Shown: piece after piece, positions 3,253 through 57,180 of the stretch
How positions within the stretch are numbered: the first letter of the stretch is position 1
Layout of the letters: each line of letters opens with the position of its first letter
DNA from: Paramoeba atlantica
Taxonomy: Eukaryota; Protista; Discosea
Assembly (NCBI GenBank): GCA_977017575.1
Contig: CDRNVI010000155.1
Span: forward strand, 1 to 64,000
Length of the DNA stretch: 64,000 nt
Direction of reading: 5' to 3'
Program-made: the position numbers and the translations under genes
The notes under the pieces: generated by a model
Databases searched by the model: none
What the model was told of the DNA's origin: nothing
Seen by the model: the letters and a program-made list of their open reading frames with translations, nothing else

Positions 3253-3456
3253 TTGAAAAGAGAAGAAGAAGAGAAAGAAGGGGTGGGTAACTTGCTGAAG
3301 AAGAGGAAGTAGGAGTAGAAGAAGAAGAGGAAGTGGGAGTAGAAGAAGAGGAAGAAGGAGCCTCAAGCAATTCGCCTGAAATAGCCGCAGCAGAGAACAG
3401 AACAAGGGTCGGAGAAAGGAACAAGAAAAAGAACAAAAAGAAGAAAGGAAAAAAAA

Positions 3457-5326: not shown

Positions 5327-5479
5327 AAAAGTTTGTTTTTCGATTTTTCTTTTATCAAAAAGTTTTGGTTTTTTGGTTTTTTTTTTTTTGACTTTCTTTC
5401 AACACAAACTCACAGTCTCGACTTGTGGTTCTTTGAACCTCATTCTCAAGACCAACTCATTCTTGGAATGAAGCTCTGG

Positions 5480-6940: not shown

Positions 6941-7300
6941 AGACAGCAAAAGTTCAGGCAAAAACTCAACAACCGAGAAGCGGTGAATCGAGATGCCAAG
7001 GGCCAAAAATCGAACAAGAAGAAACAAGAGAGGAAGAACCCGAGACAAAAAAAACAAGTCAGCAAAAAAGAAGGGTCCGCAATACAACAAGAAGAAAACA
7101 AAAATGGAGAAAAGATCTTTTTGAGAATCCCGAATTATCCATTTTTGGGAATTTTTCTTTTCTGGAGTGATACACACGTCATCAAATTTTACACAAATTC
7201 TGTCCCCGCTTTTTTTTTCTCTTTCTTTTTGTTTTTTTGCTTTTTGTTTTTGGTTTCCGAGAGCCCCGAAAGACTAAGCGCTTTTCCTTCCGAGGGGAAA

Positions 7301-31877: not shown

Positions 31878-31929
31878 ATAGTCTTTTTTTTTTTTTCAAA
31901 TTTCTTTTTTTGATTTTTGATCTCTTTTT

Positions 31930-34460
31930 TCTTGAAAAATGACGTGAACAAAAAAATTCTCTTGATTTTCTCTGCAGATGGAGGAGGGTTTAATAAAAAG
32001 GATGGTGGAATTGAATTGACGTTCAGTCGAGGGGACAAGGATTGGGAGAGAGGGAACCGTTATATGAAACCAATTGTCAATTTTCTGACTGAGAAATGTG
32101 GATCTCTGGAAAAAGAGATGCGGAAGATTTACGAAATGTTTGACAAGGTTTTTTTTGAATTTTTTATCTTTTTAATTTTTTATCTTTTTATCTATTTGTA
32201 TTTCTTTTTCTGGTTTATTTTTTTTTAAAGTTTTTTTTTTGGTTTTGATGATTTTTAAATTTTTTCTTCTTTTTTTTTTTTTTGAAACAACCATTTTAAA
32301 TTTGAAGTTAAAATTCAAACTTTGTGAAAAAAAAACTCTTTCTCTTCCTCTCTTTTCCCACAGAAAAAAATTCAATGTTCGGATGGCGTGGAACGGTGCA
32401 TTGACTTTACTGAGAGTCACATGACATGGTGATGTCATGCATTCTCTTTGGTCATGGCTGTAAATTTTTTAAAAAAAGATCAGTTGGGTCATCATAAATG
32501 TTTCCGATGTACTATCACCAGTGCACATCAAGATTGGGATGATCGTACGAAGGTTATTTTGTTTTGAATATATTCAAACACATTCATATAATTTTAAACA
32601 AACATTTAATTAATTTTATGTTTTGCATATTTGTTAAAAAAATAGCACCATTTTAACGGGTCAATCAATGGGGATGAAACATCTCTCAATATATTTCGTT
32701 CCTTTATCGAGAAAGATGAAGATGAGTTTGCCTTTACTGAGCAGAATTTTACGAATAGCCAAAATTGGTGGACTCTCCAGGAGAAAAAAGAAGGATTTGC
32801 TCGAGTGAAGAAACTCAAAGATGAGGGGAAACCCAAAGCCACGATAAAGCAAGCAAAAATTGATACAGGAATGAGACACCTTCCAATGACCCCTTCAGAA
32901 CCATGGAACCACAATTTGGAAGTAATCCACTTTCTTGTTGGGATCACATCGGGGGTGGTAAAACTTTTTCTGCGATGTGGACTCCAGGTATTTTTTTTTT
33001 AATAGATGTTGAAAAAAATGTAGATGGTTTTTTAATTTCTTTTTCAATTTTTTTATTTTCTTTTTTGATTTAATTTTATTTTCTTTTTTTGAGGATATAC
33101 CCAAAATAATTTTTTTTTTATTTTATCACCTCAGAGGATCTCAAATTTGATTGTGCTATCGGGGATGCGTTTAAACGTGCTGCAGATGTTCCAATTGCAC
33201 CATTATAACGTGAAAGCAACAACACAGAAACCTCTTTGGAAGAGAATCAAAGCTTGCAAACTCAATCGGGTCCAATGGATCAAAATTTTAAGAAGCTTTT
33301 TTCGGCAAAAAGGTTTTTTTGTTTTTTTTTTTTACTTCCCCCCCCCCCAACCATCCATCTGTTTATTGTTCTCCCACTCTCTTTCAAAAAAAGAGGGGGG
33401 GGAGGTAGGACTTCTTTTCTATTCTATAAATTTTAGTTCCTTCCTCCTCCTGAACAACAATCAAAAAGGGAAACAAGAACAAAAAAATTTTGACCAACTA
33501 GTTTCTATGGCCAAAGAAGAATGTCCCAATACATCTTGCAATGAAATGGGAGTACTTCATGATGACGAAAAACCTCTAAGGACTCAGAACTGTTCTCTAA
33601 GTATTTTTTTCTTTGTCTCTTTTTTCTTAAGCTTTTTATTTTTTAAAATTTTTTCATAATACAACCCTAAACCTTTCAGGTTTGGATGGAGGAATTGTTG
33701 ATCTTTTGCTCTCTCGGCCTGGATCAAATGGTCTTTCTAATGAAACACAGAAGGCACAGTATGATTTTCTATGCCTCACATACGATATTCTCCGTTACTC
33801 TGCACTTCCCTGTAAACTACCAGATGAAGAGGTTAATTACGTCCGAAAATGTACTCTCCAGTGGGGAAGGTTATTCAACAAATCTGGGTTCAACAAAAGT
33901 TCTTGGACATTTTATTTTCATGTCCTCCATGACCACTTGCATTGGGAATTATTCCGGTTTTTTTTTTTCAAGAACTTTTTTATTCTCTCATTTTTATTCT
34001 CTCATTTTTTATTCTCTCATTTTTATTCTCTCATTTTTTTATTCTCTAATTTTTTTTTTGTCTCTTCCTCCACACAATTCCCACAAAAACACAAACGTCA
34101 CACAATTGGTTGACACCACCATCAACCCCACCAACCAAACATCTATTTTTCTCTTCTCTTTCTCTCTTTTCTTTCTCTGCTCACCCCCCCCCCCTCCCCA
34201 GACTCACCCCTCTCTTCTTTTTTTTTATTTTAGATATCCACTCCCAAGACGAGGATCATGGGTAGTTGAGACGTTTTTCAAGCTCACAAAACGATATTGT
34301 TCTTCAGCACAACCTTTTGGAAACCCACCACGAAATCAAACCAAGGAGTCAATAGCATCATTCCGGACTCTATCACATCTCAACCTTACGGGTGTTGTAA
34401 AACGCAGAGTTGGAAATGCAGAACTTTCAGCTCTGGAATGGAAAAGTCAAAAAAAAGGGG
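31930..34460 (+). pseudogene. 5'-truncated, intron-containing RAG1/Transib-like DDE transposase
   Basis: Motifs in RAG1 order: ILLIFSADGGG (D at 31977), RYMKPIVNFLTEK, a TGA at 32430 lying 23 codons before CFRC (32499), NLEVIHFLVGITSGVVKLF, YFHVLHDH (33913) and GSWVVE (E at 34268). Exons are separated by T-rich GT-AG introns. Confidence 0.65.
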
Positions 34461-34736
34461 GTGGATTTGTTAGAGGTTTTTGTTTATTATTATTTTGAAA
34501 AGTTAGTAACTTTGTTTTTTGGAAGAAAGATATTCTCAGTGTTCTCAGTTCTCTCAGTTCTCTCAGTTCTCAGTAGAAAATTAATTTTATTATTTTCTCT
34601 TTTTCTTTTATTGTTTCCTTTTCTTTATTTTTAATTTTTTGATTATCTTTTTTTCAAAAGTGTGGTTTTGTGAGTGTTTTTTTAACTCTTCTCTTGCCAC
34701 ATTCACACTCATATATTTTTTTTCACAACAAAAAAG

Positions 34737-36161
34737 GTCAGGTTCTTTCTGCTGGAACTCCACAAACTGAAACCCTTCCACCACGAACTGATTTCGATTT
34801 CTTTGACCCACAGGGTCACTTACCAACATCGTCCATCCCAAAGGCACCTCCTCGGGCTTATGATCCTTTTCTTTCCAAAAAAAGGATTGCTTCAAACACC
34901 ACCACACCACAAAAAGGAGGCTCTTCTTCTGCATCATCAGGCTCTTCTTCTTCCTCTTCCCCTCCATTCTTATTTCAGGACTGGCCTGCTTTGTTTAGTA
35001 AGAAAAGAAAAGGTATCCTTTTTTTTTCAAAAATTTCTTTTTCAGAACTAATAATTGCTTTTTTTTTCTTCTTCTTTTTTTTTTTTCTTACTCCTCTTTT
35101 CTTTCTTCTCCTTCAACTTGTTTCACTCTCCAAGTCTCCCACACTTTTTACATACTCTGATTTTTATTCCTTCTCTCCAAAATAGGCCGGACCCACCAAG
35201 CAACAAAAAGAGAGAAACCTCAGAGAAAAAAGACTCTTTTTCTTCCATTGGGTGATGATGACAAAGTGAAACGAAGGGGAAGATGACAACATCCCCACCA
35301 GCAGGACAACTCCAACCCCAACCCCACCCCAGCAGTGGTGGGAGTGACATTTCTGCCATTGAGACTTCCCTTATTGACAAACAAAAAGCACTTCAAATTC
35401 TTTCACGAAGTGAGTGGATCAACGATATGACATCATAAATTTTTATTGTCAACATACGATTGGCTCCGAAAACTTTGTTTGTTTTTTTTTTTTCCTTTCT
35501 GTTTCTCCTTTTTTTTTTTTGATACTCCGACAAGAAACTTTATTCATCTTTTTTCTCCTCTTTCTAGAATGTAGACGATCTTTGCTACTGCTATTCCTCA
35601 CTACTTCTCACATGTCTTGAATCCAAAACAAAAGCTCCTGAACAGCGAGCATGGAAACCAGAATAAATGGCTCAATATTATATCCTCCCCTACAACATTC
35701 CAAATTGTCATTGGGCTCTTTATATTCTTTCCCATTCTGAAAAGAAATTGTGGTACTTGGATTCATACCAAACCAGTTTTTCTGTGAAGCAAAACGTTGT
35801 TTCTTGTATCGAGAGGTACTTTTCGGTTGTGAGCTTGTTAGAAGTCATCACACCCAAAGTTCCCCAGCAACAAGACGCTGTCAATCGTGGGATTTTTTTG
35901 TTGAGTTTTGTGGAGAAGTTCCTGCAGTGTGAGGACAAGCAGTGTTATTGGGAGAGTATTGAAAATGAAGTAATTGATCCCAGTCAAAAACGAAAAGAAA
36001 TCCATTCTCTCATCCTCCAGAAATCTCTCACCATTCCAAGAGATATCTCTTCTTCCACCACCGATGATGACGAAAGAGAGGGGGGAAGAGAGAAGTTGGG
36101 TGGGTCATTTGATATCTCGATTGGTTTTTGGTGGTCTGGTGTGTCAAAACCTTCCTTGTGA
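34737..36161 (+). pseudogene. Ulp1/SENP (C48) protease domain with Ser/Pro-rich linker; disrupted
   Basis: EWIND-(frameshift)-IINFY, ILPYNIPNCHWAL, WYLDS and PQQQDAVNRGIF, where the catalytic Cys position is Arg. In-frame TAA just before 35667. Confidence 0.75.
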
Positions 36162-41141: not shown

Positions 41142-41703
41142 CTCTCCCTGCCTGAGAAGTCCTTCGTTTAGAAGAAACGGAGGTGCTCGAAGAAGAGCCC
41201 AAGGAGCTTGAAGAGCTTGAGGACTTGGAAGAGGAAGAAGACTTCTTGGTTGATTTAGAGGTTGATGGTTTGGAGGTTTTCGATGACTTCATTATGGAAT
41301 TTTTGTATGGTGCCAACGTGTCAATATTTGATTGGTTTTGTTTTAATTTAGAAGAAAAAGGGGTTCTTATTTCTAAATACGGGAGAAAAGTTTGAAAAAA
41401 AACCTTGAAATCAAAAAGACATTTGATCCTTTAAAGTGCATAAAAAATTGAATGTACGACTTTTAAAAAAGTGCTTTTTTAATTATAAACTTCAGAGAAC
41501 AATTTAATTTTGAGCAAGCAAAAAGTGGAACCTTTCTCCTTCTTTTGTGGCATCGGTTTTGTTTTTGATTTGTTGAGAGAGTGAAGATGAACGATTTGAT
41601 TTTTGAGTTTGCTCAAGATGAGAATAGTCATGTTCATTTCAAGAAGGAAGAAAAAAGTTGAAAACGAAAACGAAAAAGTGAAAACCAAGGATCAGCTGAA
41701 AAA

Positions 41704-43548
41704 GTGGAGCAGGAACAAACGATCAAAACCCTCGAAAGAGACTTGTTTTGTGTTTCTTCAACATCAGGTTTCCCCAAGAACCCAGCAAATACCTTCTCAT
41801 CTCATTTTTTCCAAGTTAAGGGGAAGATTGAGGCGATTCAAAACTTTCACAAAACTGCTCGTCATCTTGTTTATCAGGAGCTCGACACTCAAGTTCAATC
41901 GACTCTTAAAAACTTGCGATCTCAAAGTGACAGTTACTCATCTCCATTGAAAGAACGAATTCATTTATTGAATATTGAAATTGAAAACAAAAAAAAGATA
42001 TGTTCTCTTCCTGGGATGTTGTCAGAAGAAGAAAAACAGTGTGAACTACTTGCAATTGCTGAAGACGAAGAGTCAATTTCGTTTTTGAAGGACTTTCTCT
42101 TTGAATTTGAAGCTGAAAATCGATATTTTGGAAGGTATTTGGAAGAAGAGCGAAGATTTTTGGAGAGTGGACAAAATATAAGCAAAAAGGATCAATTGCC
42201 TCCAAACCCACCCCAAACCTTGAATGGACAAAAATGGTTGCTGAATATGATGAAAGCTTTTTGTGGCCACGAAACGTTTGATGGAATGAAATTCCTTGAA
42301 TTGTGGATAAATTACGTCATTTTAAAGTGAGGTTTTTTCGAAACAAAATTTGAGACTGCAATGAATATTGTTGAAACTGTTCTTGATGAATTTGCCAAAA
42401 CTCAAATTCAAAATGAATTGAAGGAAAATAAGTGGGTGCCAGAAAAAGTACGCTCTCAGATTGGGGTTGGGGGGAGGTCTCAACAGAAATGCCACGATGA
42501 ACTTAATCTCTTGCTTTTCTATCGATATTCTAACGAGAATACACAATTTCGAGAAGAGGAAAAACGGTTGGAAGGATTGAACAGTGAGTCATTGCGGGAC
42601 GAATGGAAATCAAACTTTTGTAAGTAAAAGATACCGAAGAACTCAGCTCATTTAATCTTGAGAATTGATTTAATGGCAAAGTGGTGGGCTGACTTTCAAG
42701 ATTTCTCTTCACGTTCATCCTCATCGTTGAACTCACCTTCATCTTCCTTACCCTCCTCATCTTCATCCTCTTCCTCTTCCTCTTCCTCTTCCTCTTCATC
42801 TTCTTCTTCTTCACCTTCCTCTTTCCTTTTGTTGAAATCTCGTCTGGAGGAAGAATATGAGAAAAGCTCCACAAAAGAACGATTTGAGAAGAATCACTCA
42901 TTGAAGACCAAATCATTGAAGTTGCTGGTCTTTGCATTTTCTAAATGCAAAATTCCTTTTCGATTCCGAGTTGGTGATGATGGAAATTGGAAATTGGGGC
43001 GATACACGGGCACTCAAATGCGGCAAGTATTGGAGAATGTCGAAAGAATCTTTTGTTGCAATCCAAATCGACCATCCACAACATCATTGTGGGTTACCTT
43101 TCGAGAATGTTTTCAAATGCTGACAAGTGACCCCCCAAAAGGGTCAAATCGTGAAGCAGTCACCATTAAAAATGAAAAAAAAATTGGTTCTTGGAAGGAA
43201 AGCTTCACGGATTGGGGAGGGGAGATGGGTTCCACCTGGCGAATTTATTTCCACATTCTGGAAGCTCACGCAGCGGATACGTATCGTCAGTTTGGGAATT
43301 TGCGACCTTGGGCAGCAGAAGCTGGGGAGCAGGTCCACTACTTGGATCGTATGCACTTCTATCAGAGTAGCCAACGAGGTTCTGCAAATCTGAACGCTAA
43401 AGTCCTCACAACTGGACTTTGTTTTCGATACAGCCATTCTTTAGCAAATCAATATCAAACCTCTTTGGATATCCCACAAGAAATTCGAGCAACCCAAACG
43501 AATTTAAATCAAAGAAGTGAAGTGGTGACGGACCCAAAATTGATTTGA
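41704..43548 (+). pseudogene. RAG1/Transib/Chapaev-like transposase-related ORF interrupted by two in-frame stops
   Basis: Three ORFs in one frame separated by TGA (42328) and TAA (42625). The C-terminus LGRYTGTQMRQVL...YFHILEAHAADTYRQFGNLRPWAAEAGEQVH aligns with RAG1 YFHKTLAH...GSIGAWASEGNESGN. The N-terminal catalytic Asp motifs were not clearly identified. Confidence 0.6.
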
Positions 43549-43709
43549 GCTGCTCAGGAAGACCTTTTCCTCACATGAATGTACGATCTCGAAACTGAAA
43601 TTTCTTTGAAAGAAGATGGTGATGAGAAATAAAATTTACAAGTTTTTTATCAATTTCACTTCAACCAATTTTTTTGAGGGCTTTGGTTTGTGTGTTGCTT
43701 TCCTTTTAT

Positions 43710-44708
43710 TTAGTTTTTCAGAGGGTTTGATTTTTTTTTATGATTAACAAAAGACGCACCCATCATTTTCAACCCTAAATCAAGTGGCAAACTCATGTGA
43801 AAGTAACGACAAGCACGAATGGCCATTGCAGATTCTGGTGAATTTTTCCAAAGGATTCGAAGTTCGGGGAGACCAACACCACAACCACTTTCCCCCCAAT
43901 CGAAACCCAAATATTGGCAAAATGACAAACCGAAGTTTGAAGCATCTTTGTGGAGGAGGGTTCCACGGCCTCCTCCAATCCAAATTTGTTGAGTACATTT
44001 CATTGGAAGTTGAACTCTCATATCTTTTCCTGTTTCCTTCCAAGCTGTTTGAAATTTCTCACACATCCCAATCTGTTCCGCAAAAAAGTTTGAATTCTTT
44101 TTTAATCCAGTTATCCACTTCATCAAGCGATACTCTCTTATCTCATACGCAATTAAAAGGGACAAAAGAATTTTCTTCATGTCGTCCGTTAGATGTTGAG
44201 TTTGAGCCCATTCCATTAAAGAGTTTTGAATTTCGTGAAGCCCAAGAGCTATGAGGTTCCACCCCCGAGCATTCTGCTTACATTTTGGCAGGAGGAGGTT
44301 CAAAGAGAGAAGCAAAGATTGAAGGATTGACATTTTGTAAACCTCCTCTTCTGAAGCCACCTGGGAGCAAAAAAACGTGTCATTATGACCACTCTGAGAC
44401 GAAATGTATAAATCCCCAGAAACGACATTTAAAAGGTTTTCCTCAACCAATAAATCCAAGTGCTTTAAAAACCCACCTGATTGATCTGAAAGTTGTTCCA
44501 AAATTTTGGGTCTGTCATTCAATTCTGGATAGATTCGAAGCCAACCTTTCCGATCCCATTCGTTATTTAACCCCCCTTCTGACTCATCATTGAACTGAAG
44601 GATTTTCAATCCTTTTGTCAAAAAAGCAAAATCAAAGGAGGTGAAGGCCTTTCTTTGAGCTTTGGAGGGAATCTCCTGGAAGTAACGATCCAAGTAGGAT
44701 GCATTCAA
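43710..44708 (-). CDS. TET/JBP-like 2-oxoglutarate/Fe(II) dioxygenase
   Basis: Intact intronless 332-aa ORF. DSBH signature GTLLHKDASNFG (HxD at 43944-43952) ... GCGVGLPEL ... AIRACRYFH (distal His at 43797-43799) ... GLKMMGASF, with Lys at the usual 2OG-binding Arg position. Confidence 0.65.
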   Translation of the reverse strand: MNASYLDRYFQEIPSKAQRKAFTSFDFAFLTKGLKILQFNDESEGGLNNEWDRKGWLRIYPELNDRPKILEQLSDQSGGFLKHLDLLVEENLLNVVSGDLYISSQSGHNDTFFCSQVASEEEVYKMSILQSLLLSLNLLLPKCKQNARGWNLIALGLHEIQNSLMEWAQTQHLTDDMKKILLSLLIAYEIREYRLMKWITGLKKNSNFFAEQIGMCEKFQTAWKETGKDMRVQLPMKCTQQIWIGGGRGTLLHKDASNFGLSFCQYLGFDWGESGCGVGLPELRILWKNSPESAMAIRACRYFHMSLPLDLGLKMMGASFVNHKKKSNPLKN

Positions 44709-44962
44709 CGTGCAATCATGTGATCAGGTGCAAGAGGACAGCCTCGAAAACGAACCCCACTTCCTCCAAACTCAAGAACACCATGGTTCCCTTCACTTCC
44801 CTCAATTTTTAAATCCCAAATTTTCGATTGGATGGATTTGCTTTGATAAGTTTTCCCAAGAAATGTTCAATTCTTGTAAAATCTCACGAGCGTTTTGAAA
44901 GCAGCCCATTTTTCTCAAACTCCTCAAGTTTTTTGCCTTGCCTGCCTGCCCCACAAATTGTG

Positions 44963-45310
44963 TTTGAGATATTTAGCCACCACTCCTTTCTAAAATTTTT
45001 CAACAATAAAAAAATTCAAAAAGTTCCTCAAATTGAACTTTTTGAAGTGTTGAAATAAAAAAAGAGTATTTTTGCTTCCCCACAAAAAAAAAAGTTTTTG
45101 TGGAAAAAGTTTTAAACCTTCAATAAAACTAAAAAATCCTTTTCAGAGGGAGTTTAATTCATTTGAAATATTTAGCCACCACTCCTTTTTAAAATTTTTC
45201 AACAATAAAAAAATTCAAAAAGTTCCTCAAATTGAACTTTTTGAAGTGTTGAAATGAAAAAAGAGTATTTTTGCTTCCCCACAAAAAAAAAAGTTTTTTT
45301 GTGAAAAAGA
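44963..45310. repeat. ~150-bp tandem duplication in the spacer between divergent cargo ORFs
   Basis: 44963-45110 is approximately equal to 45162-45310 (tttgaratatttagccaccactcc...cacaaaaaaaaaagttttt). Confidence 0.8.
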
Positions 45311-45366
45311 TCTTTCAACCCTTTCTTCCCTCAGTTTTCCACTTCTATTTTCTTTTCCTTTCCACA

Positions 45367-47468
45367 ATGAAGTGTTTATATTGCAATTCTGAGATTCAAA
45401 ACGGTTCAGTTCATTATTGGGGTTTCTTGATTGTTGCTCTGGTTGGTTTTCCAGTTTAATTACAAAATCGAAAATTGAAAAAAACACCAAACTCGTCGCC
45501 AATTATCTCGTTGGAGTCTCCGATATTTCCAAGGGGTTCGATTATTTCGATTGCAACACAGCATTTTGCCCAGGTTACGTCGGATACTCAAATTATTGTG
45601 GTGGTTCCTATGTGGATTTTTTGAAGCGAACGTCGTGGTTGGCACGAGTCTCCCCCGCCTTCGAAACCACAATAAAAGTGGACACAAACTCACCCCAAAT
45701 TGACCACGAGAAAAAAAAATATTTCAACCTTAGTGAACAAACAAAAAAGGAGGTTACTTTTTTTTCATCAGTTTGCTGGAAAGTCAGCTCAGGAATTGGT
45801 GAGTCTTCAACTTACCCTCAGTTCTGGATTTGGAAAGAGGTCCTTGAAGAAGGTTCCTTTTGGTATTTGGATCCCGGAAAATTACAGAATTTGCAAAGCA
45901 ACAAAACTTTCCCTCCCCTTTTGAGGCCTCTTATCTTCGACGAAAAGAAACCACTTGTCGGTCGAGTTGAAACCCTCTGTAGTCAGGGGAAACGGGGATA
46001 TTCCTGCTTGCTCCAACTCTGCTTACCCTTTCCAAATCAAGGGGACCTTTTCGTTAGAAGTAATTCTTGTGGTGAACCATGGGATCCATCAACATCACTA
46101 ACTCCGTGCCCACTTTTACTTCTAAAGGATTATTTGCTGGTTCTGAGTAAGAAAGAACTCCTTGATTCATTGCTGAATGAAGTTTTCGTTTTTATTCGAG
46201 AAGACGATTTCCCTGCAACCAACCAAGCGATTTTAGAGAAGTTGAACCCCTCCAAACCACTCAATCCAAGGGATGTTTTTGAACTCGTTCACTCAACGCC
46301 GTTGATTAAAGAAAAGATTCAATTGGACAGAGTGGATTCTCTTTTTCCAAGTTCTGATTACCTCTTCGTCAAGGCCTTGAACACTGATCGTCATCTCCCT
46401 TGGCAAAAATCAACCAACCAAAAAGCCTCAAAGGAGTTTCAGCAAGGAAAGGAAATGCCAAAGCGCAAGAGGAAGGAAAAATCAGCCCGAGAAACCTCTC
46501 CTCTTCCCTCGATGATCCCCAAGCGACCTCAGACTGCACATCCTCAAAATAATAAGAAACAAACTCCAAAACCCTCCCTGCGTCCCACACGACACAACCA
46601 TTCAGAAGATTACATTTTCGATTCCCTCCCAAATGAAAAAAAGCAAAAGAAAGCCAACACGAATAAGGAAACTGATCACTCATTACCAGCGACCTCATCT
46701 CCACGAGGTTCCCCACTTCCCCAATCACCAGAACTTCAACAATCTCCTTCACCAACTGAAACTGACCAATCCTTACAACCTGAAAAACCCGTCTCCAGTC
46801 AATTAATACTCCACTCTCCTTCAACAAAAATGAAACAATCACAATTAAACACCAATCCACTAACTTTTGAGCCAATGATTTCAAACGTACCAACACTTGA
46901 CCACATTCAACAATTCCACTCTAATTCCACTTCCTCCGATCCAATAGATCGAAACAAATCTATAATTCAACAACTGCCACTTCAGTCTTTTCAATCAAAT
47001 TCCACCCCCATTCCATTCAAAGAAGGAGCAACAAACCCCTATCTTTTTATTCAAAATCAACTACCACCAATACCTCAAGTCATTCAAATTCAATCCAACC
47101 CATTTTTTCCTCAACAAGAACCAACTTCTTATGAAACATTTTCAACTCCACAAACAATAATTCAACTCCCACTTCCTCAATCTTCTCAAACCCAACCAAA
47201 TTACAATTTCCGACCAGTTCCACGAAACCAAACTTCCTATCAAATACTTTCTATTCAATCACCCCAACAATTCCAACAAAATTTCAATCCTTCACCCAAA
47301 ATCCGATTTCAACAAAATGGCAATTCACAAATTTATGGATTGGCTCAACAACCAATGTATCAATCAACGGCGGTGGCAAACCCACAACCACTTCGAAATC
47401 CCCAACTATCAACGGTGTGTGGCAATGACACATCCTCACAAACCCAAGTATTTTTTTTTTGGATTTGA
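45367..47468 (+). CDS. Cargo protein of unknown function: Cys-containing N-terminal region and long Pro/Gln/Ser-rich tail
   Basis: 683-aa ORF. An upstream ATG at 45367 (MKCLYC...HYW) joins it through a single frameshift to GFLDCC. Possible extra exon near 47525. Confidence 0.5.
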
Positions 47469-47850
47469 ACATTTCTCTTTTTCAATTAATATTTTTTATT
47501 AATCCATTTTTTTCAAAATTCAGATGAATCAAATTCTTTTACATCAAAGGCAGATGCAGCAAGAACTTGACGAACTGAAAAAGTTAGTTTTTTCATTTAC
47601 TAATTAAATTTTTTCCCCTTTTTTTTTCAACATTTTACTAACAATGGAAATAGATCCAAAAAATAGTTTCATTTTTTTCAAGATTTTTTTGTAAAATAAA
47701 TTTAATTTTGTTTCAAAATAATTCAACAAATAATTTCCTTCAAGTGCAACGAAAGCCAGATGCATTTGTAACTTCAATGATTCCACAGCATTCAAATTGA
47801 CTTTTTTTTTTCGTAAATTTTAAAATCAACTCAGATTCACACTTGATCAT

Positions 47851-48410
47851 TCAATCTTCATCAGTTTGAATAACATCAGATTCAATCCAATGATGAAGAA
47901 CGATATTTACCTCCCCATTTAAAAAAATATTGCCGTGAGAACTTTGCGAGAGAATCTTTTTGGTTCGCCATTCAGAACGGTTCAAAAAGCAAGAATCCAG
48001 TTTTTTTAAATCGTCTTGAGAACAGATTCGAGCACATTGTCCTGATTCATCGACTTGAAACTTCACTTTTTCGAATTTTTTCAATGGTTCCCAAAAAATC
48101 TTACAGAAAATTTGTTTTGGCAACGGTAGCTGAATCCGAAAAGATCGAATTCGTTTCTTCAAGGCAAAATCAAGTCACTTTTCAAATTCAGGAAGAATCA
48201 TGGAGTTCACCCATCACTTTGTCTCATTCAAATTGAAACTCTCTTCATCAACAGGAATGGTCTCCATCAGCAGCGGCTGCTGTGTTTTTTCCACTCCTCT
48301 TTTTCGGCGTTTTCTTCGCTTCTCAACAGTTTTTTGTTTCCTCTTTTTCGTTTGTTGAATTTTCTCAGTAATGAAATCAATCTCCATGATTTCATCTAAT
48401 GAGATTGGAG
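47851..48410 (-). CDS. Small basic cargo ORF(s) just inside the right TIR, interrupted
   Basis: ORFs 48214-48540 (NLS-like KKRKQKTVEKRRKRRKR) and 47851-48162. No recognisable domain. Confidence 0.3.
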
Positions 48411-50210
48411 GTTCTTTTGGTGTTCGTTTTGGCAGTTTCTCATTCCCTTTCATTGCCAGAATCAAAAACGGAGAACAAAACGAAAAAAAGTCCGATTTAT
48501 TTTTTAACCAATCAAATATTGACACGTTGGCACCATACAAAAATTCCGTAATGTAGAGGAAGAGGAAGAGGAAGAAGACTTCTTGGGTGACTTGGAAGTC
48601 GATGATTTGGAGGATGATGACTTAGAGGAAGATGATTTAGAAGGAGGTGGATTCAGAGGGTGTTTCTGATGATACCTTTCGATTTGTTCTGAGGCATCAA
48701 TTTGTGAAACATGGATCCATTCAGTGTTGGCCTTTCAGTAGTGTTTGAAATGCACTTGATAATAAAGTTCTCCATTCGAATACTTATGCTTAAGGATTTC
48801 CTTCACTTCAAAATCATAACCATCATCATCTTCAACAATCTCTTTGGGTGCTGGCTCTGAATTAACAATAGATATTTCATTTGATTCAGGATGCAGAGTA
48901 ATCTTGTACTGAACATGGAGTTTCTTTAAGTTCTGAATGTTTTGGATTTCTGAATTCTTCTCTTGTTTGAGTTCTTGAATCTGGTAACTTCCATTCTTAA
49001 GATCCTCCACAACCACATAAATCTCTTGATAATAATAGGGTCTGTACTTCTTCACAATCTCTTTTCCTTTTGATTTGTTTCTCTTCAACACTTGATCACC
49101 AACCTTCAACACAGTGTATGTTCCTTCATTTGCTTTGTCATATCATTGTTTTTATTTCACAGCCACTTTCTCTCTCTTTTCTCAAACCCAATTAATCATG
49201 CCCTCCCTCTCAGTTTGTAGCTTCTTGACATAGTCATCAATCAGTACCACTGGTTTGTTCACAGAGCCGAAGAGAGAATTGATTGGCATAATTGGATGTC
49301 TCCCAAAGTGAAGATAGAAAGGTGTGTAACCAGTTGAGGAGGAATGAGAAGTATTGAAAGCAAATTCCACAAGAGGTAAGAGAAGGTCCCAATCATCTGC
49401 ATATTTATCAACAAATGAGCAAATGATTGATTCTGTAACTTTGTGGGAACATTCAACATGGCCATTACTTTTGGAGTTGTAGGGGGCAATAAAAGTTTGT
49501 TTCATTCTGAGAAGCTGGGTCAGTTTTGCAAAAATTTGATTTGCAAATTCTGAACCATTATCTGTTACTATCTGCAAAGGCATTGAATTAACACAAACAT
49601 ACTGAAGTAAGGCTTCAGCAGAGGCTTCAGCAGAGGGATCTGGAATTGCATACAGACATATATAGTCACTAAAGTTATCAAGGATAGCCAAAATAAAAGA
49701 ATTCCCATGAGCAGTGACTTTTGGTCCCTTTGTACAATCCAGGTGGAGTAAAATTCCAGGGTAAGAAGCCATGTAAGGATTTAAATCAGATGTCAATGTC
49801 TTTGTTTTTGAGTTGATCACACAATTAAGGCAACAGTGATAGTAACCTTTGATCACAGCACTCATACCAGGAAAATAATAGGAGACAGCAATTGCATCAT
49901 AAAGTTGCTTGAACTTGTGGTGTCCAGAGATTAGATCTGAATGATAAGTGTCAAATACTGTATTCCACAAACTCTGGGGCAGAATTGCAGGTGGGAAACA
50001 ACCAGCAGCTGTAGTTTCATCCACTTTCCTCAAGATTCCAGATTCATCAACCCAGTACTTGTGAGCAGTTTGTTGGAGTGCTCAAAGATAGTGCTTCCTC
50101 TTAGGCAAGAGGCTATTAATCAAGTAGTTAATAATCATTGAGCAAAACTTATCTTTCCTTTGAGCCTGAGCAAGGTAAGGAAGTTCAACTAAAACCTGAT
50201 CAATGTCATC

Positions 50211-53200
50211 TGTGCAGATTAAGTTCTACAGGGGTTGCAAGAGAAAAGGGAAAGCACAAGTTTTTGTCAGGAAAGTTAAAAGTGGTTTACTAAGGAGGTT
50301 AAAGGTCAGGTGTGACGAAAGGAAAGGTCCGTGGAGAATTCTTTCAGGCGTGACCGTTCTGGGAAGCGGTTACTGGATCAATAAAGGTGTCCGAAGACAA
50401 TTTGAGGAATATCTTCTTTAGCGTTCTAGTTTAGCGCGTTATTTTCTTTTTCGCGTTTCTTGTTTTGTTGCGGGAGTTTGGTTGTTTGTTCGTTCGTTTA
50501 GTTTTGTTCAGAAGCAGCTGTGCATCCTCCCGGGGCTCGAAGAACGTCTAGCTTGCGTTATAAGGATTTGTAAAGCAATGGAGATGTTGCTATAAGTTTG
50601 GAATCGCATGGAAAACCCAGTGGGAAAAAAAGCCATGGTTCAGGAGTTGTCCGCAGGAGGGAGCCAATGCCGAGAGCTGGTGTGGAAGGGGCAAAAGCTC
50701 GTTGTGTGAGGAAACCCAAGAGTTCTGGGAGGAAAACCTCACTTTCTTGCAAGAGGAAGGACCATTGGAGTGTAACTCTTGGTCTGTTATTCATAATCAG
50801 CGTAACGAGTACTGGCTCGTAGCCTCCTCCCCCGAGCAGAAAAATTGGGCTGGGGTTGAGTTGGGAGGGTGTTTGTCGAAGCAGCTGCAGCTGCCTGGGG
50901 CTGTGGTAGTGGAGGGGTAACATTGTGATTTCGTTTATAGAATTCAATGAGATCAGGAGCATCGATTTCATCTGCAAGAAACCAGACTGCGTGGTCTGCT
51001 CGGAAATTTTTGTATTGAACTTTGTAATGAAGTCTTCCCTGTGGGTCGAATTTGTGAGCAAGAATTTTCTTTAATTCATAGTCACAATCATCACCCAGGT
51101 CGAAGTCATCAAATTCAATTTGTTCGTCATCCTCAGGGAGACAGACAGGTTGTTCTGTGAGTGCCTGGTTTGCAGGTTCATGATTTAATTCATATCGAAT
51201 TTTTAGTTTTTTTAATCTCATAATGTTTTCAGTTCGCGGAAGTTCTTCCCATTTGAGATCTTGGATCGTATATGTTCCGTTGGAATGGATACCGGTGACC
51301 TTGTAGATTTTTCGGTAGAAAAGTGGTCGGTATTTCTTTCCTATGGAGCTGTCTTTGTCATCCTTTGCGAGGAGGACAAAATCTCCAAGGTTCAGCATTT
51401 TAATCATTGTGTGATGGGTTTCATCATAGCGATCTTTGTAAAGGTTTGCTGCTTTTTGTTTTTGGTCTTTGACCCAAGCAAATACTATATCTTGTTGAGT
51501 TTGTAGTGTTTTAACATACTCATGTGCTGTTGTAACAGGACGGTATGCTGTGTCGTACAAAGCCTCAATGGGTAAGACTGGATGTCTTCCATAGAAAAGA
51601 AAGAATGGCGTATAATTTGTAACTGAGGATTCAGATGTGTTGTATGCGAATTCTAAGAGCGGGATCAGCAGGTTCCAATCATCTTTGAAGTCATTGATGA
51701 AAGCACAGATCATTGTTTTGATCACTCGATGTGTTTCTTCGACTTTTCCATTACTTTGCGAATGGAGAGGGCAAATCAAGGTGTGTTTGATTCCAAGCAA
51801 ATGAATCAGGTCAGCAATTAATTCATTTGCAAATTCTCTTCCATTATCAGTAATGATTTTTAAAGGCATTGAATGTAAGCAAACATATTTGAAGAGCGAT
51901 GATGCAGATGTATTAGCATCAGGTTGAGGGATGGCATATAAGCGGAGATATCCCATAAAGATGTCAACAACTGCAAGGATGTGTGAATTTCCTCGAATTG
52001 TTCTGTTTGGTCCTGGGGTGCAGTCAATCTGGATTACCAGGCCAGGGTATTGTATGTTGCGGGTTGGATTTAATTCTGCGCGCAATTGGGCAGTTCTGGT
52101 TGTTATTTGGCATTCCAAGCAACGGTTACAATATGCTTTAATGTAGGTATACATTTGTTCAAAATAGAATGAATCTCGAATAACTTTGTAAAGTTTTTCG
52201 AATTTTCGGTGTCCTCCTGTGGGAGAGTTATGACTGATGTCAATTACTTCATCCCAGAGAGCTTTGGGGAGAACTGCAGGTGGCAGTCCTTTTTCTATTG
52301 GGAACATCTCATCGATTTTTCGAAGGATGCCTTGGTCGTCAACCCAATATTTGTGAGATTGTGTTTGCAGGTATTTGAGAGCTGATTTTCTTCTAGGAAG
52401 TGTCTCAAATTGAAGATAATTGATTAATTTTAAACAGTGTTTGTCTTCCCGTTGCATTCGAGCAAGTCGTGAAAGATTAACTGGTTGGTCAATTTCTTCT
52501 GAAAAGGTGTCCCCCCCCTCGCTTGTGGAGGCTTCTTGAAGAAGAAGGAGGTCAGGTCCTGAATTTTCAATTGTTCTTATTTCAGGAATATGTGCATTTT
52601 GTTCCTCAAGGAAGTCTAATCTTTGTAAAAGGTCAGATTGTTTGTCCAGAGATTTGTTGGTTTCACTGTTTCCAGTTTTGACTGCTGTCTCAACCATATC
52701 TTTAAAGATGTTTGTTATCTCATCAGTTTCTGTTTCAGTGTCATATGTAGCATAATGACGGCTGAGGGCATCTGGAATTGCCATTAGTTTGCCTGGTTTG
52801 TGTATAACACGGACGTTATACTGCAGGATTCTTGCGATCCAGTCACAGAGCATTTTGTGATTGGGCATGTGTTCAGTTGCGTTTATTATGTCAGAGAGAC
52901 TGCTGCAATCGCAGTATACGATTGGGTCGCGTCCGTAAACATAATATTTGAATGTGTTGAGTGACCAAAGAATTCCAAGACCTTCACGGACTGGATTTGT
53001 GTATTTTCTTTGTGTCTCAGTAAGCGCATGAGATGCATACTCAACAACTCGGTGATTACCATTCTCATCTAGTTGTGTGAGGATGGCTCCAAGGCCAGTT
53101 TTGCTTGCGTCTACATGGATGTAGAATTGTTTTGAGAGATTGGGGTGAGCCATGCATGTCTCATCAGTAAGCATTTCTTTTAACAATTCAATTTCATTGA

Positions 53201-56200
53201 TTGCTTTTTTTGTCAATTTAAATGATTTGTTATCCAGTTGGGCTGCTTTTCGAAGATTTGCGGTTAATGCTGAAAGCCTTGGTATAAATCTTCTGAGCCA
53301 TGATGTCATGCCTAAGAATCTGCTCACCTCTTTTGGTGTTCTTGGCAGTGGATAGTCTTTGATTGCTTTGACTTTTTTGGGATTAGGCGATAATCCATCT
53401 TTTGATGCAACAAACCCAAGTATTTCGAATGTGGGTCTGCAAAAGGAGCATTTTGAGGGTTGTAAGATGAGATTGTGATCTCTCAATCTTGTGAGGATTT
53501 GTTCAAGGTGCTTGATATGATCCTCAAATGATGTACTGAAAGCGAGTATATCATCAAGATAAGCAAAACAGCATATCCATAGGAGACCATTTAGAACAGC
53601 CTCTATGAATCGTTGTTGCGTTGGGGGTGCGTTGCATAACCCGAATGGCATGGAAAGAAATTCCCAGAGGCCGTATTTGCTTGTAAAAGCTGTTTTTTCG
53701 ATGTCATTCGGATGGATTGGAATTGACCAGAATGCGTCAGTGAGATCAATTGTTGAGAAATAAGAAGCATTCCCCAATACTGCAAGTATTTCATCCATTT
53801 TTGGAAGTGGGTATGAATCTTTCTTTGTCACTTTGTTAAGTGCTCTAAAATCAATGCAAAATCTGATTTTTCCATTTTTCTTATCAGCTAATAAAATGGG
53901 TGAAGCCCAAGGCGATTTTGATGGTCTAATAACTTTGCGAAGTGCCATCTTATTGATGTGTTGCCAGATGATATGATCTTCAACTGGACTTGTCCTGCGA
54001 GGATTATGTTTAATTGGTGGACCCTCAACCTCTATTGTATGAGAGGTAGAGGTTGTTCTTTCGAGAGGTCCTTCTCTTTTTTCTTTACTCCAAAGATCTT
54101 TGAAAGAGTGGAGCAGAGTTGCTAATTTTTCTTTTTGAACAGCTGTCAAATTTGTTGAGTCGATTTTGAACTCATCATAAACTTGTTGAAGTTCTGGATT
54201 CCGAGTTTGCGGGGAATCAGATTCATCAGTGGGCTTTTGGGAATCTGCCAGTTTTGCTGCAAGCATTTGAATAACTGGTTCTTCGCCAATGCCATCGAAT
54301 TGTTTGTTTTTAATAAAGGGTTTGTTGTCCTTTTGGAGTTGTTTTGGATAGATTGGTTCTGTTTTCTGCCAATTGCAATTGGGTGTTTTGTGTTTTTGTT
54401 CCGGTTTTTTCGGTGGAGAAGGGGTTTCCTTCTTGAAATTAAATTTTGTTTCCGTAATAGGATTTTTTGTGAGCTCAATGAGCTCTGTATCAGCCACATC
54501 TTGTTCGTTGACCATGTAGACTTTTCCAAGCACGGCTTTGTCTGGTATGGTAACGGTTTGTGCTGTTGGATTTGCTACCAACAGTGTGATTTCTCCATCA
54601 CTGCGGATGTCCACAAGTCCAGGAAAAGCCAGCAGCTTTCCACCTCCAGTGACTATCGGTATAAAGAATCCTTGTGGCGATGTGATAGGTCTAACTAATT
54701 TGAGTGTTATTGTTTTTAAAGCTCTTGGCGGACACTTTGCCCTCACAGCTTGGGCGTGAAGTAATCCTGCATGACCAAAGATCTTTAAATGCTCAAGCGC
54801 AAGTGGATCCATCTGATTAGAGAGATCTGAGGGGGGGTTTGCTTGTGTTTGGAATTTACCCCTGTAAGTTATGGTGTTGTCACTTGGATTATATGCAATT
54901 CGCATGCGATGCGAGGTTGGTCGACCGATTAAGCATTGAACTGGCAAGTGATCAACAATGAGAAACCATAACTTAGCAGTGCATTCCCCAAATTGAAATG
55001 TGGTTGCAATTGCCTGCTTAGCGAGAGTTTGGGTTGAATTTCCCATTGCAATGCGGAATGGAGTTTCAAGTTCTCTGATTTCCTCAGTTTTGAATCCATG
55101 TTTTTGCGTTAATTCTCGGCTAATAGCATTGAGTCCTGCCCCGGTATCAAGGCAGGTGACCGTTTGGAGGCCTCCCACAGTTGCTTGAAATTCCAGCGGC
55201 GACCCAATTATTGCTGTGACCTCATCAGCTTTTTGTGGATGGGCGTTTTGGGTTGGAAGATGCTGCAACAGTTGGAATTCTGCTTCGCAGGGAGCAGATG
55301 CAGGTGCCTGATGGGCTGTTCTCTCAATCATTCCACAGCGCGTTTTGTGTTCTTTGCAAAAAGACGATTTGAGAGATGTTTGAGCGTGAGGGATTTCCTT
55401 TTCTGATTCACAACCGTCAAGTTTGTACGACACGGTCTGACATTGTTTATCACAAGGAGGAATTCTCTCATCAGTCTCAATATTAATAAAAGCAGCGGGG
55501 TAATTTTGGAAAGGTTTATTAGCATTACCTTGTTGAATAGCAGGTTGTGCTTGAGCAACAGTTTGTTGTTGTTGTGGAGGCGAAGCAGCAGGTTGTGTGG
55601 CTGCTTTTTGGAGGTGTGGGGTCAAAGCAGCCAGTAACTTTGGAACAAATGAGTTGATCATTTGCTCTTCAGTTCGTGGTTTCTTTGTGGGGGGTTCCCC
55701 AGTATTGCGAGGAGGTTTGTGAGGATTGTTCCCGCGAGCATTTGGGTTTCCACGTGGATTGTGTGGTGGTTGTTTGTACCTTCTCTTTGATGGAGGTGGT
55801 TCATTACCAGCTCGCAGAGCCGCAATCACTCGACAATCTTTGTCAGCATGGGTGATATTGAATCCATGAATGGAGCAGCAATAGACAAAAGAAGCGTTTG
55901 TCAAGTTTGGAGTTTTGTTAAAACAGGTAAATTGTTCACGGTATCCGAGAACTCGAGGGCAGTTCAGGGAGGAGTGATCAGTACTGGCGCAAGCCAAACA
56001 CATTGTCTGCTGCTGCAGATCTTGTGCCGCATCTCTGAATTCCTGATTGTGAGGGTCCAGGCGGAGTATAGGTGTGGGTGAAGGAGTGGTATTGGAGCGG
56101 ATGAAAGGATATTTTGGTTGGCTCTTGCATGAGATAGCTGTTTCTTCAGGTGGTTGATCAGGTGATAACCTCTTGACCGCTTGCCAGGCTTCTGAGAAAG

Positions 56201-57180
56201 GTGAGGAGAGGATTTTGTCTTGTAGAGTTTGGAAGATTCGGGGGTCAGTCAACCGTATGCCTCTCTCATACTCTCTCTCTGCTGCTTGGCGGAAGATTTG
56301 AAGGTGTTGGGAGAGTTTGATTGAATTGTCAAACACTAACCGCGCGATCCACCTCGTCGATACCAGTGAGCTGTTGGATCCCAGTTCCATGTTAATGGCC
56401 GTCAAGAAATCTTGAAAAGGTTGGAAGGAGGTGGCAACCACGGTGTAGCCCTTCGACTTCAAGTGTTTAGACAACACTTGAGAGAGAAATTTGTAGTTCG
56501 GCCAGAAGTCGCAAGTCCATGTATAGTAGATGTTGGAGAGAAAATGGGTAAAGCGTGTCCGACTGTTTTCACCTGTCGCAGGGGGTGGTGTGAGGCTTGA
56601 GTCCAAGAATGATTCAAAAGATTTTTGAATTGTCTTGTGGGTTTTTGCTTCATACGGGGTAAGGTTCTTTGGGAGAGGAACCTTCTCGTTCGGTTCAGGC
56701 TCGCTGATGATAGTCGAGAGGTCGAGGTTGCCAAAGTTCAAGTTTGGTTGAGGCCGTTGCTGAGTTGCATTCTCATTCACAGCTGTTTGACCAAGGGTGG
56801 TTGGACCCAAGACAGTTTCATCAGTGTTTGTGTTACGGTCCATAAGTTCGAAACGGCGTCGCCAAGTGTGCAGATTAAGTTCTACAGGGGTTGCAAGAGA
56901 AAAGGGAAAGCACAAGTTTTTGTCAGGAAAGTTAAAAGTGGTTTACTAAGGAGGTTAAAGGTCAGGTGTGATGAAAGGAAAGGTCCGTGGAGAATTCTTT
57001 CAGGCGTGACCGTTCTGGGAAGCGGTTACTGGATCAATAAAGGTGTCCGAAGACAATTTGAGGAATATCTTCTTTAGCGTTCTAGTTTAGCACGTTATTT
57101 TCTTTTTCGTGTTTCTTGTTTTGTTGCGGGAGTTTGGTTGTTTGTTCGTTCATTTAGTTTTGTTCAGAAGCAGCTGTGCA
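50211..57180 (-). mobile_element. Young full-length chromodomain Ty3/Gypsy LTR retrotransposon
   Basis: 314-bp LTRs at 50211-50524 and 56867-57180 (TG...CA, 4 mismatches), 4-bp TSD CATC (50207-50210 and 57181-57184), PBS TGGCGACGCCG at 56854-56864 (minus strand), PPT GGGAGGA. Confidence 0.95.
50787..56843 (-). CDS. gag-pol: Single-ORF Gag-Pol: CCHC knuckle, aspartic protease, dUTPase-like segment, RT, RNase H, integrase, chromodomain
   Basis: CLACASTDHSSLNC; CLDTGAG; FAYLDDIL; HVDASKTG; H...H...CNRC with IQIDC/ITDNGREF/GKVEE; YELKKILAH...HAVW. The likely start is MDRNT (56843), downstream of the PBS. Confidence 0.95.
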   Translation of the reverse strand: MDRNTNTDETVLGPTTLGQTAVNENATQQRPQPNLNFGNLDLSTIISEPEPNEKVPLPKNLTPYEAKTHKTIQKSFESFLDSSLTPPPATGENSRTRFTHFLSNIYYTWTCDFWPNYKFLSQVLSKHLKSKGYTVVATSFQPFQDFLTAINMELGSNSSLVSTRWIARLVFDNSIKLSQHLQIFRQAAEREYERGIRLTDPRIFQTLQDKILSSPFSEAWQAVKRLSPDQPPEETAISCKSQPKYPFIRSNTTPSPTPILRLDPHNQEFRDAAQDLQQQTMCLACASTDHSSLNCPRVLGYREQFTCFNKTPNLTNASFVYCCSIHGFNITHADKDCRVIAALRAGNEPPPSKRRYKQPPHNPRGNPNARGNNPHKPPRNTGEPPTKKPRTEEQMINSFVPKLLAALTPHLQKAATQPAASPPQQQQTVAQAQPAIQQGNANKPFQNYPAAFINIETDERIPPCDKQCQTVSYKLDGCESEKEIPHAQTSLKSSFCKEHKTRCGMIERTAHQAPASAPCEAEFQLLQHLPTQNAHPQKADEVTAIIGSPLEFQATVGGLQTVTCLDTGAGLNAISRELTQKHGFKTEEIRELETPFRIAMGNSTQTLAKQAIATTFQFGECTAKLWFLIVDHLPVQCLIGRPTSHRMRIAYNPSDNTITYRGKFQTQANPPSDLSNQMDPLALEHLKIFGHAGLLHAQAVRAKCPPRALKTITLKLVRPITSPQGFFIPIVTGGGKLLAFPGLVDIRSDGEITLLVANPTAQTVTIPDKAVLGKVYMVNEQDVADTELIELTKNPITETKFNFKKETPSPPKKPEQKHKTPNCNWQKTEPIYPKQLQKDNKPFIKNKQFDGIGEEPVIQMLAAKLADSQKPTDESDSPQTRNPELQQVYDEFKIDSTNLTAVQKEKLATLLHSFKDLWSKEKREGPLERTTSTSHTIEVEGPPIKHNPRRTSPVEDHIIWQHINKMALRKVIRPSKSPWASPILLADKKNGKIRFCIDFRALNKVTKKDSYPLPKMDEILAVLGNASYFSTIDLTDAFWSIPIHPNDIEKTAFTSKYGLWEFLSMPFGLCNAPPTQQRFIEAVLNGLLWICCFAYLDDILAFSTSFEDHIKHLEQILTRLRDHNLILQPSKCSFCRPTFEILGFVASKDGLSPNPKKVKAIKDYPLPRTPKEVSRFLGMTSWLRRFIPRLSALTANLRKAAQLDNKSFKLTKKAINEIELLKEMLTDETCMAHPNLSKQFYIHVDASKTGLGAILTQLDENGNHRVVEYASHALTETQRKYTNPVREGLGILWSLNTFKYYVYGRDPIVYCDCSSLSDIINATEHMPNHKMLCDWIARILQYNVRVIHKPGKLMAIPDALSRHYATYDTETETDEITNIFKDMVETAVKTGNSETNKSLDKQSDLLQRLDFLEEQNAHIPEIRTIENSGPDLLLLQEASTSEGGDTFSEEIDQPVNLSRLARMQREDKHCLKLINYLQFETLPRRKSALKYLQTQSHKYWVDDQGILRKIDEMFPIEKGLPPAVLPKALWDEVIDISHNSPTGGHRKFEKLYKVIRDSFYFEQMYTYIKAYCNRCLECQITTRTAQLRAELNPTRNIQYPGLVIQIDCTPGPNRTIRGNSHILAVVDIFMGYLRLYAIPQPDANTSASSLFKYVCLHSMPLKIITDNGREFANELIADLIHLLGIKHTLICPLHSQSNGKVEETHRVIKTMICAFINDFKDDWNLLIPLLEFAYNTSESSVTNYTPFFLFYGRHPVLPIEALYDTAYRPVTTAHEYVKTLQTQQDIVFAWVKDQKQKAANLYKDRYDETHHTMIKMLNLGDFVLLAKDDKDSSIGKKYRPLFYRKIYKVTGIHSNGTYTIQDLKWEELPRTENIMRLKKLKIRYELNHEPANQALTEQPVCLPEDDEQIEFDDFDLGDDCDYELKKILAHKFDPQGRLHYKVQYKNFRADHAVWFLADEIDAPDLIEFYKRNHNVTPPLPQPQAAAAASTNTLPTQPQPNFSARGRRLRASTRYADYE

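Follow-up and report, generated by a model that had tools for sequence, protein, structure and literature searches.

We wanted to establish what kind of mobile element occupies positions 41290-48553 of a 64,000-nucleotide stretch of Paramoeba atlantica DNA (contig CDRNVI010000155.1 of assembly GCA_977017575.1, positions 1 to 64,000; hereafter the window), which enzymes it carries and what moves it. An initial annotation of this DNA had described the element as a transposon, bounded by terminal inverted repeats (TIRs), that couples a RAG1/Transib-like transposase to a TET/JBP-like dioxygenase. Our results point, with moderate confidence, to a low-copy, recently mobile TIR family of the cut-and-paste type, with a highly diverged TET/JBP gene as cargo (open reading frame 2, ORF2), an orphan gene (ORF3) and a long frame that resembles a transposase (ORF1).

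We observed that the whole element, taken in plus orientation, is 7,264 bp long and is bounded by a left TIR at 41290-41337 (plus strand), starting with 5'-CATTAYGG, and a right TIR at 48506-48553 (minus strand). The TIRs are 48 bp long and differ by one mismatch; their limits were set by comparison with other copies. The repeat finder returned a single outstanding inverted pair within 40.5-49.5 kb, with arms at 41287-41337 and 48506-48556, which as extended by the aligner were 51 nt long and 96% complementary. Both flanks of the element belong to the tail of a multi-copy retroelement, downstream of an integrase fragment with rve and Integrase_H2C2 domains and a chromodomain-like end (49182-50033, minus strand). 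In at least six uninterrupted paralogues of this retroelement the left and the right flank abut and overlap by exactly one base, as judged from match coordinates only (for example C170:171001, C194:35354 and C230:8250; C-numbers are contigs of the 45.7-Mb genome assembly used for all copy searches, and the window is from C155). Since the flanks meet on the same base in these empty sites, the insertion was precise. Thus the near-perfect 48-bp TIRs around a 7.26-kb insert and the precise split of an old Gypsy tail, both claimed in the initial annotation, were confirmed.

The sole candidate for a target-site duplication (TSD) is a 1-bp one, the T at 41289 that is repeated at 48554; it is based on the empty-site overlap and on the flank bases. 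Read in the orientation of the element, 7 of 9 left ends have a T just before them and 5 of 7 right ends have one just after. Flanks of the T...T form were found in five of the six complete end pairs, and T is the only thing that the pairs have in common. Therefore the flank bases and the empty sites together indicate a 1-bp duplication at T, or none. The termini themselves read CATTAYGG...CCRTAATG at all 16 family ends and are thus of the CA..TG type.

Further, we searched the genome for other copies. There were at least five full copies at different sites with unrelated flanks, which supports a TIR-bounded mobile element and makes segmental duplication an unlikely origin of the copies. The window copy (C155:41290-48553, 7,264 bp) is 99.7% identical, with no indels, to a copy at C209:9266-16529 (7,264 bp). 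The copy at C154:56576-65603 (9,028 bp) is 97.2% identical to the window copy and has five insertions, while the two copies on C140, at 96899-104131 (7,233 bp) and 69084-77277 (8,194 bp), are 94.2% and 88.7% identical to it, respectively. Another assembly, ENA ERZ24900291, has two more copies, 98.8-99.7% identical, on a single contig (L062). The element's first 411 bases matched at seven places and the TIR at sixteen, and a terminal 25-base pattern gave 22 genome matches versus 0 for the reversed control. Fragments of the element were detected on C178, C153, C218, C206 and C142, and an older family with 85% DNA identity on C203 and C207. ORF1, ORF2 and ORF3 stand in identical order in every full copy, and in all five ORF2 lies inside the terminal repeats. 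The predicted linkage of a transposase-like and a dioxygenase gene in other TIR-bounded copies was therefore found in all full copies; an intact ORF1 was found in none.

ORF2 forms a convergent pair with ORF1, as had been noticed before: ORF1 spans 41587-43548 on the plus strand and ORF2 spans 43710-44708 on the minus strand. ORF2 encodes 332 aa, and its frame is open to 44723 (337 codons). It contains the motifs HKD, LPEL, HMS and K, and its key residues are H253 (43950-43952), D255 (43944-43946), H304 (43797-43799) and K315 (43764-43766). Pfam gave no match for ORF2 or ten of its relatives at E up to 1, PF12851 included. A HMMER search of 1.84 billion representatives recovered only 32 relatives at E of 0.001 or better, and paralogous families in the genome were 35-43% identical. 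In a 16-member alignment GT..H.D was invariant, and GLS..Y.G, a distal HMS and [KR]MM.A.FV were also found. H253, D255 and H304 were invariant or nearly so among the 16 relatives, so that the HxD...H metal-binding triad is present. The 2-oxoglutarate-binding position is occupied by Lys in the window copy, and the family as a whole has K or R there.

The fold was then assessed with an AlphaFold2 model calculated from the 16-member alignment (predicted local distance difference test score, pLDDT, 79.4; predicted template modelling score 0.81). When this model was compared with PDB by Foldseek, hits 1-21 were all CcTet, NgTET1 or CMD1, with E from 3.5e-10 to 2e-6, and the first 2-oxoglutarate oxygenases outside the TET group appeared at E 5e-5. 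The VIA Z was 19.8 for NgTET1 (223 residues aligned, root-mean-square deviation 3.3), 19.1 for CcTet, 16.7 for human TET2, 15.5 for CMD1 and 12.8 for AlkBH3 / FTO. The sole PDB match of the family profile was NgTET1, at an E of 0.16 that is not significant alone; in this alignment HKD stood opposite HKD, the distal H opposite H, and K/R opposite the Arg of WRIG. A language-model search with ESM Atlas features gave Tet_JBP at 0.96, and by shape the best Atlas match (template modelling score 0.73 over 299 residues) was an Ascomycota cluster that carries Tet_JBP. By predicted fold, ORF2 is clearly TET/JBP-like and belongs to the nucleic-acid-modifying branch, closest to TET structures and not to other 2-oxoglutarate oxygenases, as the initial annotation had proposed. 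Among TET-fold enzymes the ORF2 family forms a new and very diverged branch. As its co-substrate position has Lys or Arg, its chemistry may be unlike that of canonical TETs. The claim that the dioxygenase ORF is intact stood in part: the frame is open across the whole fold and the HKD, LPEL, HMS and K motifs are there, but a start codon is missing from its first part, as described below. The neighbours of metagenomic TET-like relatives, which lie on short contigs, included no ORF1-like or ORF3-like gene, and a metagenome locus scan with the TET alignment gave no match.

The genome also contains four canonical Tet_JBP domains (PF12851, 125-140 bits), at C3:218187-218660, C30:803409-803882, C39:574702-575160 and C40:275206-275664, in uninterrupted frames of 893-1,048 codons. 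The four probably represent TET genes of the host and not the branch that the transposon carries. On L068 (ENA ERZ24900291 ctg2863l), at 4847-7941, a broken gene with DNG...E..GK..D motifs precedes a third TET-like paralogue (P0016, 43% identical) of the same strand. This locus looks like another family of TET-carrying elements with a different transposase.

We compared the copies for traces of cytosine loss. The observed to expected ratio of CpG was 0.68 in the window copy, 0.70 in C209, 0.37 in C154, 0.15 in the C140 copy labelled C140a and 0.03 in C140b. The bases that the two young copies have in common served as the original state. Relative to it, C140b was changed at 173 of the 338 C/G positions in CpG, that is essentially every CpG, whereas only 0.9% of A/T and 8.0% of the remaining C/G positions were changed. 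No strong second sequence context was found for the C140b changes. Across DNA runs, 77 of 86 variants were C>T or G>A. Genes were broken mostly by change of CGA to TGA, and one decayed copy had 13 TGA and no TAA or TAG. This decay is characteristic of cytosines that are heavily methylated and then deaminated, or else of a process like repeat-induced point mutation centred on CpG. Such a cytosine-directed attack on the copies gives a plausible job to a transposon-borne 5-methylcytosine (5mC) oxidase. Of the earlier suggestion that the element escapes surrounding CpG methylation, the strong cytosine-directed decay of old copies was observed here, while methylation may be what underlies this decay and the escape is a putative role of the cargo.

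A reading of TGA as a sense codon of the host was rejected, as the 2,042-codon Gypsy frame of the window and the host TET frames (893-1,048 codons) are free of TGA. Public protein P0037 and a P0002-like product are gene calls made with translation table 4 (TGA = Trp) on decayed transposon copies. The TET-like product called on L069 (ENA ERZ24900291 ctg3321l, 3295-6530) was translated in this way too, and the Trp residues at TGA sites in it and in P0037 are artefacts.

ORF1, the putative transposase, has about 653 codons in one frame, with just three stops in AT-rich DNA. It is nevertheless interrupted by stops in every copy. The TGA at 41659-41661 occurs in the window copy only, with CGA in C209; the TGA at 42328-42330 is common to all copies; and the TAA at 42625-42627 is confined to young copies. 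Because the older copies (the two on C140) read GAA or AAA at the last site, this TAA is a derived nonsense mutation and not part of an intron. Introns that would remove the stops were sought, and of the many GT..AG pairs none was compelling. The window copy, the C209 copy and the two L062 copies lie at different sites but have the same two stops, and they therefore moved after ORF1 broke. Either they were moved by an enzyme supplied in trans, or the transposase is a protein other than ORF1. We regard the present copies as probably non-autonomous and moved in trans. A (TCCTCT)n microsatellite at 42754-42818 (plus strand) codes for a Ser run in ORF1.

Near the end of ORF1, at 43246-43329 (plus strand), the translation contains the motif YFH-x4-H-x13-W-x2-E-x2-E (YFHILEAH...WAAEAGE), that is H(4)H followed by a candidate catalytic Glu. 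Elements of the CMCT group (EnSpm-Mirage-Chapaev-Transib), ESTA included, have such motifs, so the motif argues at most for this broad group. The one positive result of the searches with ORF1 came from the language model: of the 100 clusters nearest to it, those with a family name were all RAG1_ZnH2/ZnC2/RAG1_C, with scores of 0.92 and 0.90, at 143 and 165 of 256 shared features, which is below the range typical of true members.

ORF3 (683 aa; 45417-47468, plus strand), which had not been mentioned in the earlier description, is intact in young copies. Its N-terminal half is rich in Cys and its tail in Q, P and S. No family was found for it by Pfam, Atlas or homologue search, where the word index gave only its own decayed copy. 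Upstream of ORF3 there are only TGA stops for 140 codons.

Based on these results, the following mechanism may be proposed. The host would methylate copies of the element at cytosines. By analogy with NgTET1 and CcTet, its closest structural relatives, ORF2 might oxidise 5mC on or near the element, and this would delay silencing as well as deamination and mutation of the element. ORF1 would be the remnant of the family transposase, from the broad CMCT group to judge by its H(4)H-E motif and by the element's CA..TG termini, and the current copies would depend on transposase supplied in trans.

Several observations weigh against this interpretation. ORF1 had no significant sequence match to any transposase. 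Pfam, run on all ORFs, gave no family for it, and phmmer with all ORF1 pieces and the 127-aa motif region against PDB, RAG1 and Transib structures included, gave no RAG1/Transib match at E up to 10 (there were chance matches only, among them an acylase that also has WAAEAGE). A word-index search with the C-terminal part, which covers only proteins of 0.55-1.75 times the query length, found no homologue. Genome searches with the family models Plavaka PF18759, RAG1 PF12940 and Transposase_21 PF02992 gave no match, although for PF12940 and PF02992 this is weak evidence, as their controls were silent everywhere. The ORF1 frame has no CxxC, the single one being elsewhere in a closed frame. The alignment-free AlphaFold model of the stop-free C-terminal 306 aa (42628-43545) had a pLDDT of 37 and was unusable, so that it spoke neither for nor against an RNase H fold. 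The TSD of at most 1 bp is shorter than the 5 bp of Transib and also than the 2-5 bp of the CMCT lineages described so far. A search of the genome by terminus pattern detected no autonomous partner with these ends. In the ORF2 frame there is no ATG before codon 130, and the in-frame stretch upstream from ATG 44909 (44694-44909, minus strand, 72 codons) contains four TGA codons, with TAA and TAG absent, in every copy and likewise in the older family; the ORF2 cargo may thus not be translated as read. The first ATG of ORF3 is at codon 354 of its open frame. No RNA run holds the element, save for a 178-nt contig at 46801-46978 in ORF3, and that its source run is RNA is a guess. Finally, old copies are hypermutated all the same, so any protection was at best temporary.

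What ORF1 is can be explained in other ways. It may be a true RAG1/Transib-type DDE transposase, the element then being an autonomous Transib relative that captured a TET gene. The motif with YFH-x4-H and the RAG1 families as sole Pfam-named language-model neighbours fit this proposal; upstream FDGM and CHDE or GDDG stretches could supply two Asp, although the candidate D and E residues of the triad were picked by eye only; and fungal ESTA elements, similar to RAG1 by HHpred, carry TET genes (PMC12730594). On the other hand, PF12940 and the PDB search were without match, no plus frame of ORF1 has a C(2)C motif, the TSD is not 5 bp, the termini are CAT.. and not CAC.., the shared features are below true-member level, and stop codons in ORF1 are common to all copies. 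We consider this possibility very unlikely. The original RAG1/Transib assignment was thus not supported, although the motif and CA..TG termini are present. Alternatively, ORF1 may be an accessory or decayed gene of other function, and the mover may be ORF3, a spliced ORF1/ORF3 product or an unlinked enzyme. Near-identical copies stand at different sites even though ORF1 is interrupted everywhere, ORF3 is intact in all young copies, and its lack of a start for 354 codons suggests that it may be a downstream exon; a 1-bp TSD outside the CMCT range and a single-sequence model of the ORF1 C-terminal part that was almost all helical (at low confidence) point the same way. Yet neither a nuclease motif nor a family could be recognised in ORF3, a CMCT transposase and its element would be expected to have just such an H(4)H-E motif and such CA..TG termini, and non-autonomous transposon families mobilised in trans are common. 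We therefore rate a mover other than ORF1 as a possibility, though on the unlikely side.

The cargo also admits of other explanations. ORF2 could be a dead passenger in the sampled copies, with its start region hit by four CGA-to-TGA changes and its frame open only through youth. The four in-frame TGA after ATG 44909 recur in every copy and in the older family, CGA-to-TGA is the dominant route of breakage, and there is no AG acceptor between the last of these TGA and the conserved LDRYF of ORF2. An intron joining ATG 44909 to ORF2 was rejected, because the sole phase-compatible acceptor would delete LDRYF and the sole donor is out of phase. The TGAs would be either old CGA-to-TGA hits in the master copy or part of an unusual way of making gene starts. 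Nevertheless, the 337-codon frame is uninterrupted and all family-invariant residues are kept in all four to five young copies, in which ORF1 already has stops; and the upstream stretch does not resemble the N-terminal extensions of paralogues and so may have been non-coding from the outset. We find a dead passenger unlikely. Still less likely, in our view, is that ORF2 makes a hypermodified base (by thymine hydroxylation as in JBP, or glyceryl-5mC as in CMD1) that marks or shields the DNA of the element with no demethylation. The Lys at the 2-oxoglutarate position (K/R in the family) and the divergence of the family beyond Pfam Tet_JBP would agree with such an activity, and Kojima 2025 raises the same possibility for diverged fungal types (PMC12730594). 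The best matches of ORF2 are, however, the 5mC oxidases NgTET1 and CcTet, none of the element's genes was recognised as a glycosyltransferase or another modifying enzyme, and decay centred on CpG suggests that the mark in question is 5mC.

We compared the preferred interpretation, a mobile TIR family with diverged TET/JBP cargo, with known systems. Eleven lineages of DNA transposons carrying TET genes have been described from three fungal groups (Kojima 2025, PMC12730594); they include EnSpm, Plavaka and ESTA, the last being RAG1-like by HHpred (PMC12730594). According to Iyer et al. 2014, in the part relayed by PMC12730594, the fungal lineages comprise Kyakuja/Dileera/Zisupton, Plavaka, EnSpm, ESTA, hAT7, IS3EU, PHISTA and Helitron. 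The proposed role of TET in these transposons is escape from methylation-based silencing, and the TSD of CMCT elements is 2-5 bp (PMC12730594). Therefore the statement that no coupling of TET cargo with a RAG1-type transposase had been described is out of date, given fungal ESTA (Kojima 2025, PMC12730594).

Like the fungal elements, the element studied here is TIR-bounded and has a TET/JBP gene beside a transposase-like gene, the third gene of no recognised family being also frequent among them; several such families occur in one genome, and repeats of the host are hypermutated at cytosines or methylated. Unlike them, it lives in a protist outside the three fungal groups, its ORF2 is below Pfam detection with 32 relatives at E 0.001 or better, its TSD is 1 bp at most, and its transposase-like ORF1 is unplaced and interrupted. 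With ESTA and the CMCT group (EnSpm/CACTA, Mirage, Chapaev, Transib, Plavaka, Lanisha) it shares 5'-CA..TG-3' termini and a long ORF in which, close to the C-terminus, an H(3-4)H is soon followed by a conserved Glu, and both ESTA and ORF1 recall RAG1 by remote methods only. It differs from this group in that ORF1 has neither the C(2)C motif nor a detectable DDE core and the TSD is 1 bp or none versus 2-5 bp. ORF2 has the HxD...H triad in the same register as NgTET1 (Naegleria) and CcTet (Coprinopsis), but its sequence identity to them is about 10%, it has Lys instead of the Arg of NgTET1 WRIG, and residues 163-225 form a helical insert. The NgTET1 peptide itself is absent from the genome, which sets the organism apart from Naegleria gruberi. 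The differences from known TET-carrying elements are thus the host, the divergence of the TET branch, the 1-bp-or-no TSD and the unplaced transposase, and the host lineage may be new for TET-carrying transposons.

It is conceivable, although we hold it rather doubtful, that the element founds an undescribed cut-and-paste lineage, defined by 48-bp TIRs, CATTA ends, insertion at T and a 1-bp-or-no duplication, with a transposase remotely related to RAG1/Transib-EnSpm and an independent capture of a divergent TET in a non-fungal protist. If so, the arming of transposons with 5mC oxidases would be a counter-defence general among eukaryotes and not one peculiar to fungi. A clean, recently mobile TET-carrying example in an unrelated protist extends the phenomenon beyond three fungal lineages, and it comes with an internal age series from CpG-rich young to CpG-free old copies. 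This makes it a tractable case for asking whether a transposon-borne 5mC oxidase delays methylation-driven silencing or mutation, and whether the enzyme acts in cis on its own element.

The remaining features of the element are minor. The divergent spacer between ORF2 and ORF3 contains an internal imperfect duplication of about 160 bp (44963-45323; units 44963-45120 and 45156-45323), and the C154 copy has an extra 199-bp unit of it. Two short basic-rich ORFs read inward from the right TIR on the minus strand (48214-48540 and 47851-48162). The C154 copy further carries three insertions of 423, 441 and 406 bp, 96-98% alike, at positions equivalent to 42106, 42917 and 48103 of the window. They represent a poly(A)-tailed element of about 400 bp with target duplications of about 15 bp, which looks like an active retroposon of the SINE (short interspersed nuclear element) kind.

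The search for the same termini with a different interior turned up only one structure, of about 0.72 kb, at C178:106130-106848 and C207:12910-13629. It has diverged versions of the element termini with a third terminus inside, and it may be a derivative resembling a miniature inverted-repeat transposable element.

Next to the older Gypsy remnant hit by the insertion, the window contains an uninterrupted Gypsy/chromovirus polyprotein of 2,042 aa (50787-56915, minus strand) with protease, reverse transcriptase, RNase H, integrase and chromodomain. On the other side of the element, an intron-split gene at 31917-36161 holds SSWTFYFHVLHDH, which resembles STWRIYFHILEAH of ORF1, and it adjoins a fragment of Ulp1 protease (PF02902, E 1.5e-4, 35667-36161). 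This locus is probably another CMCT-like element.

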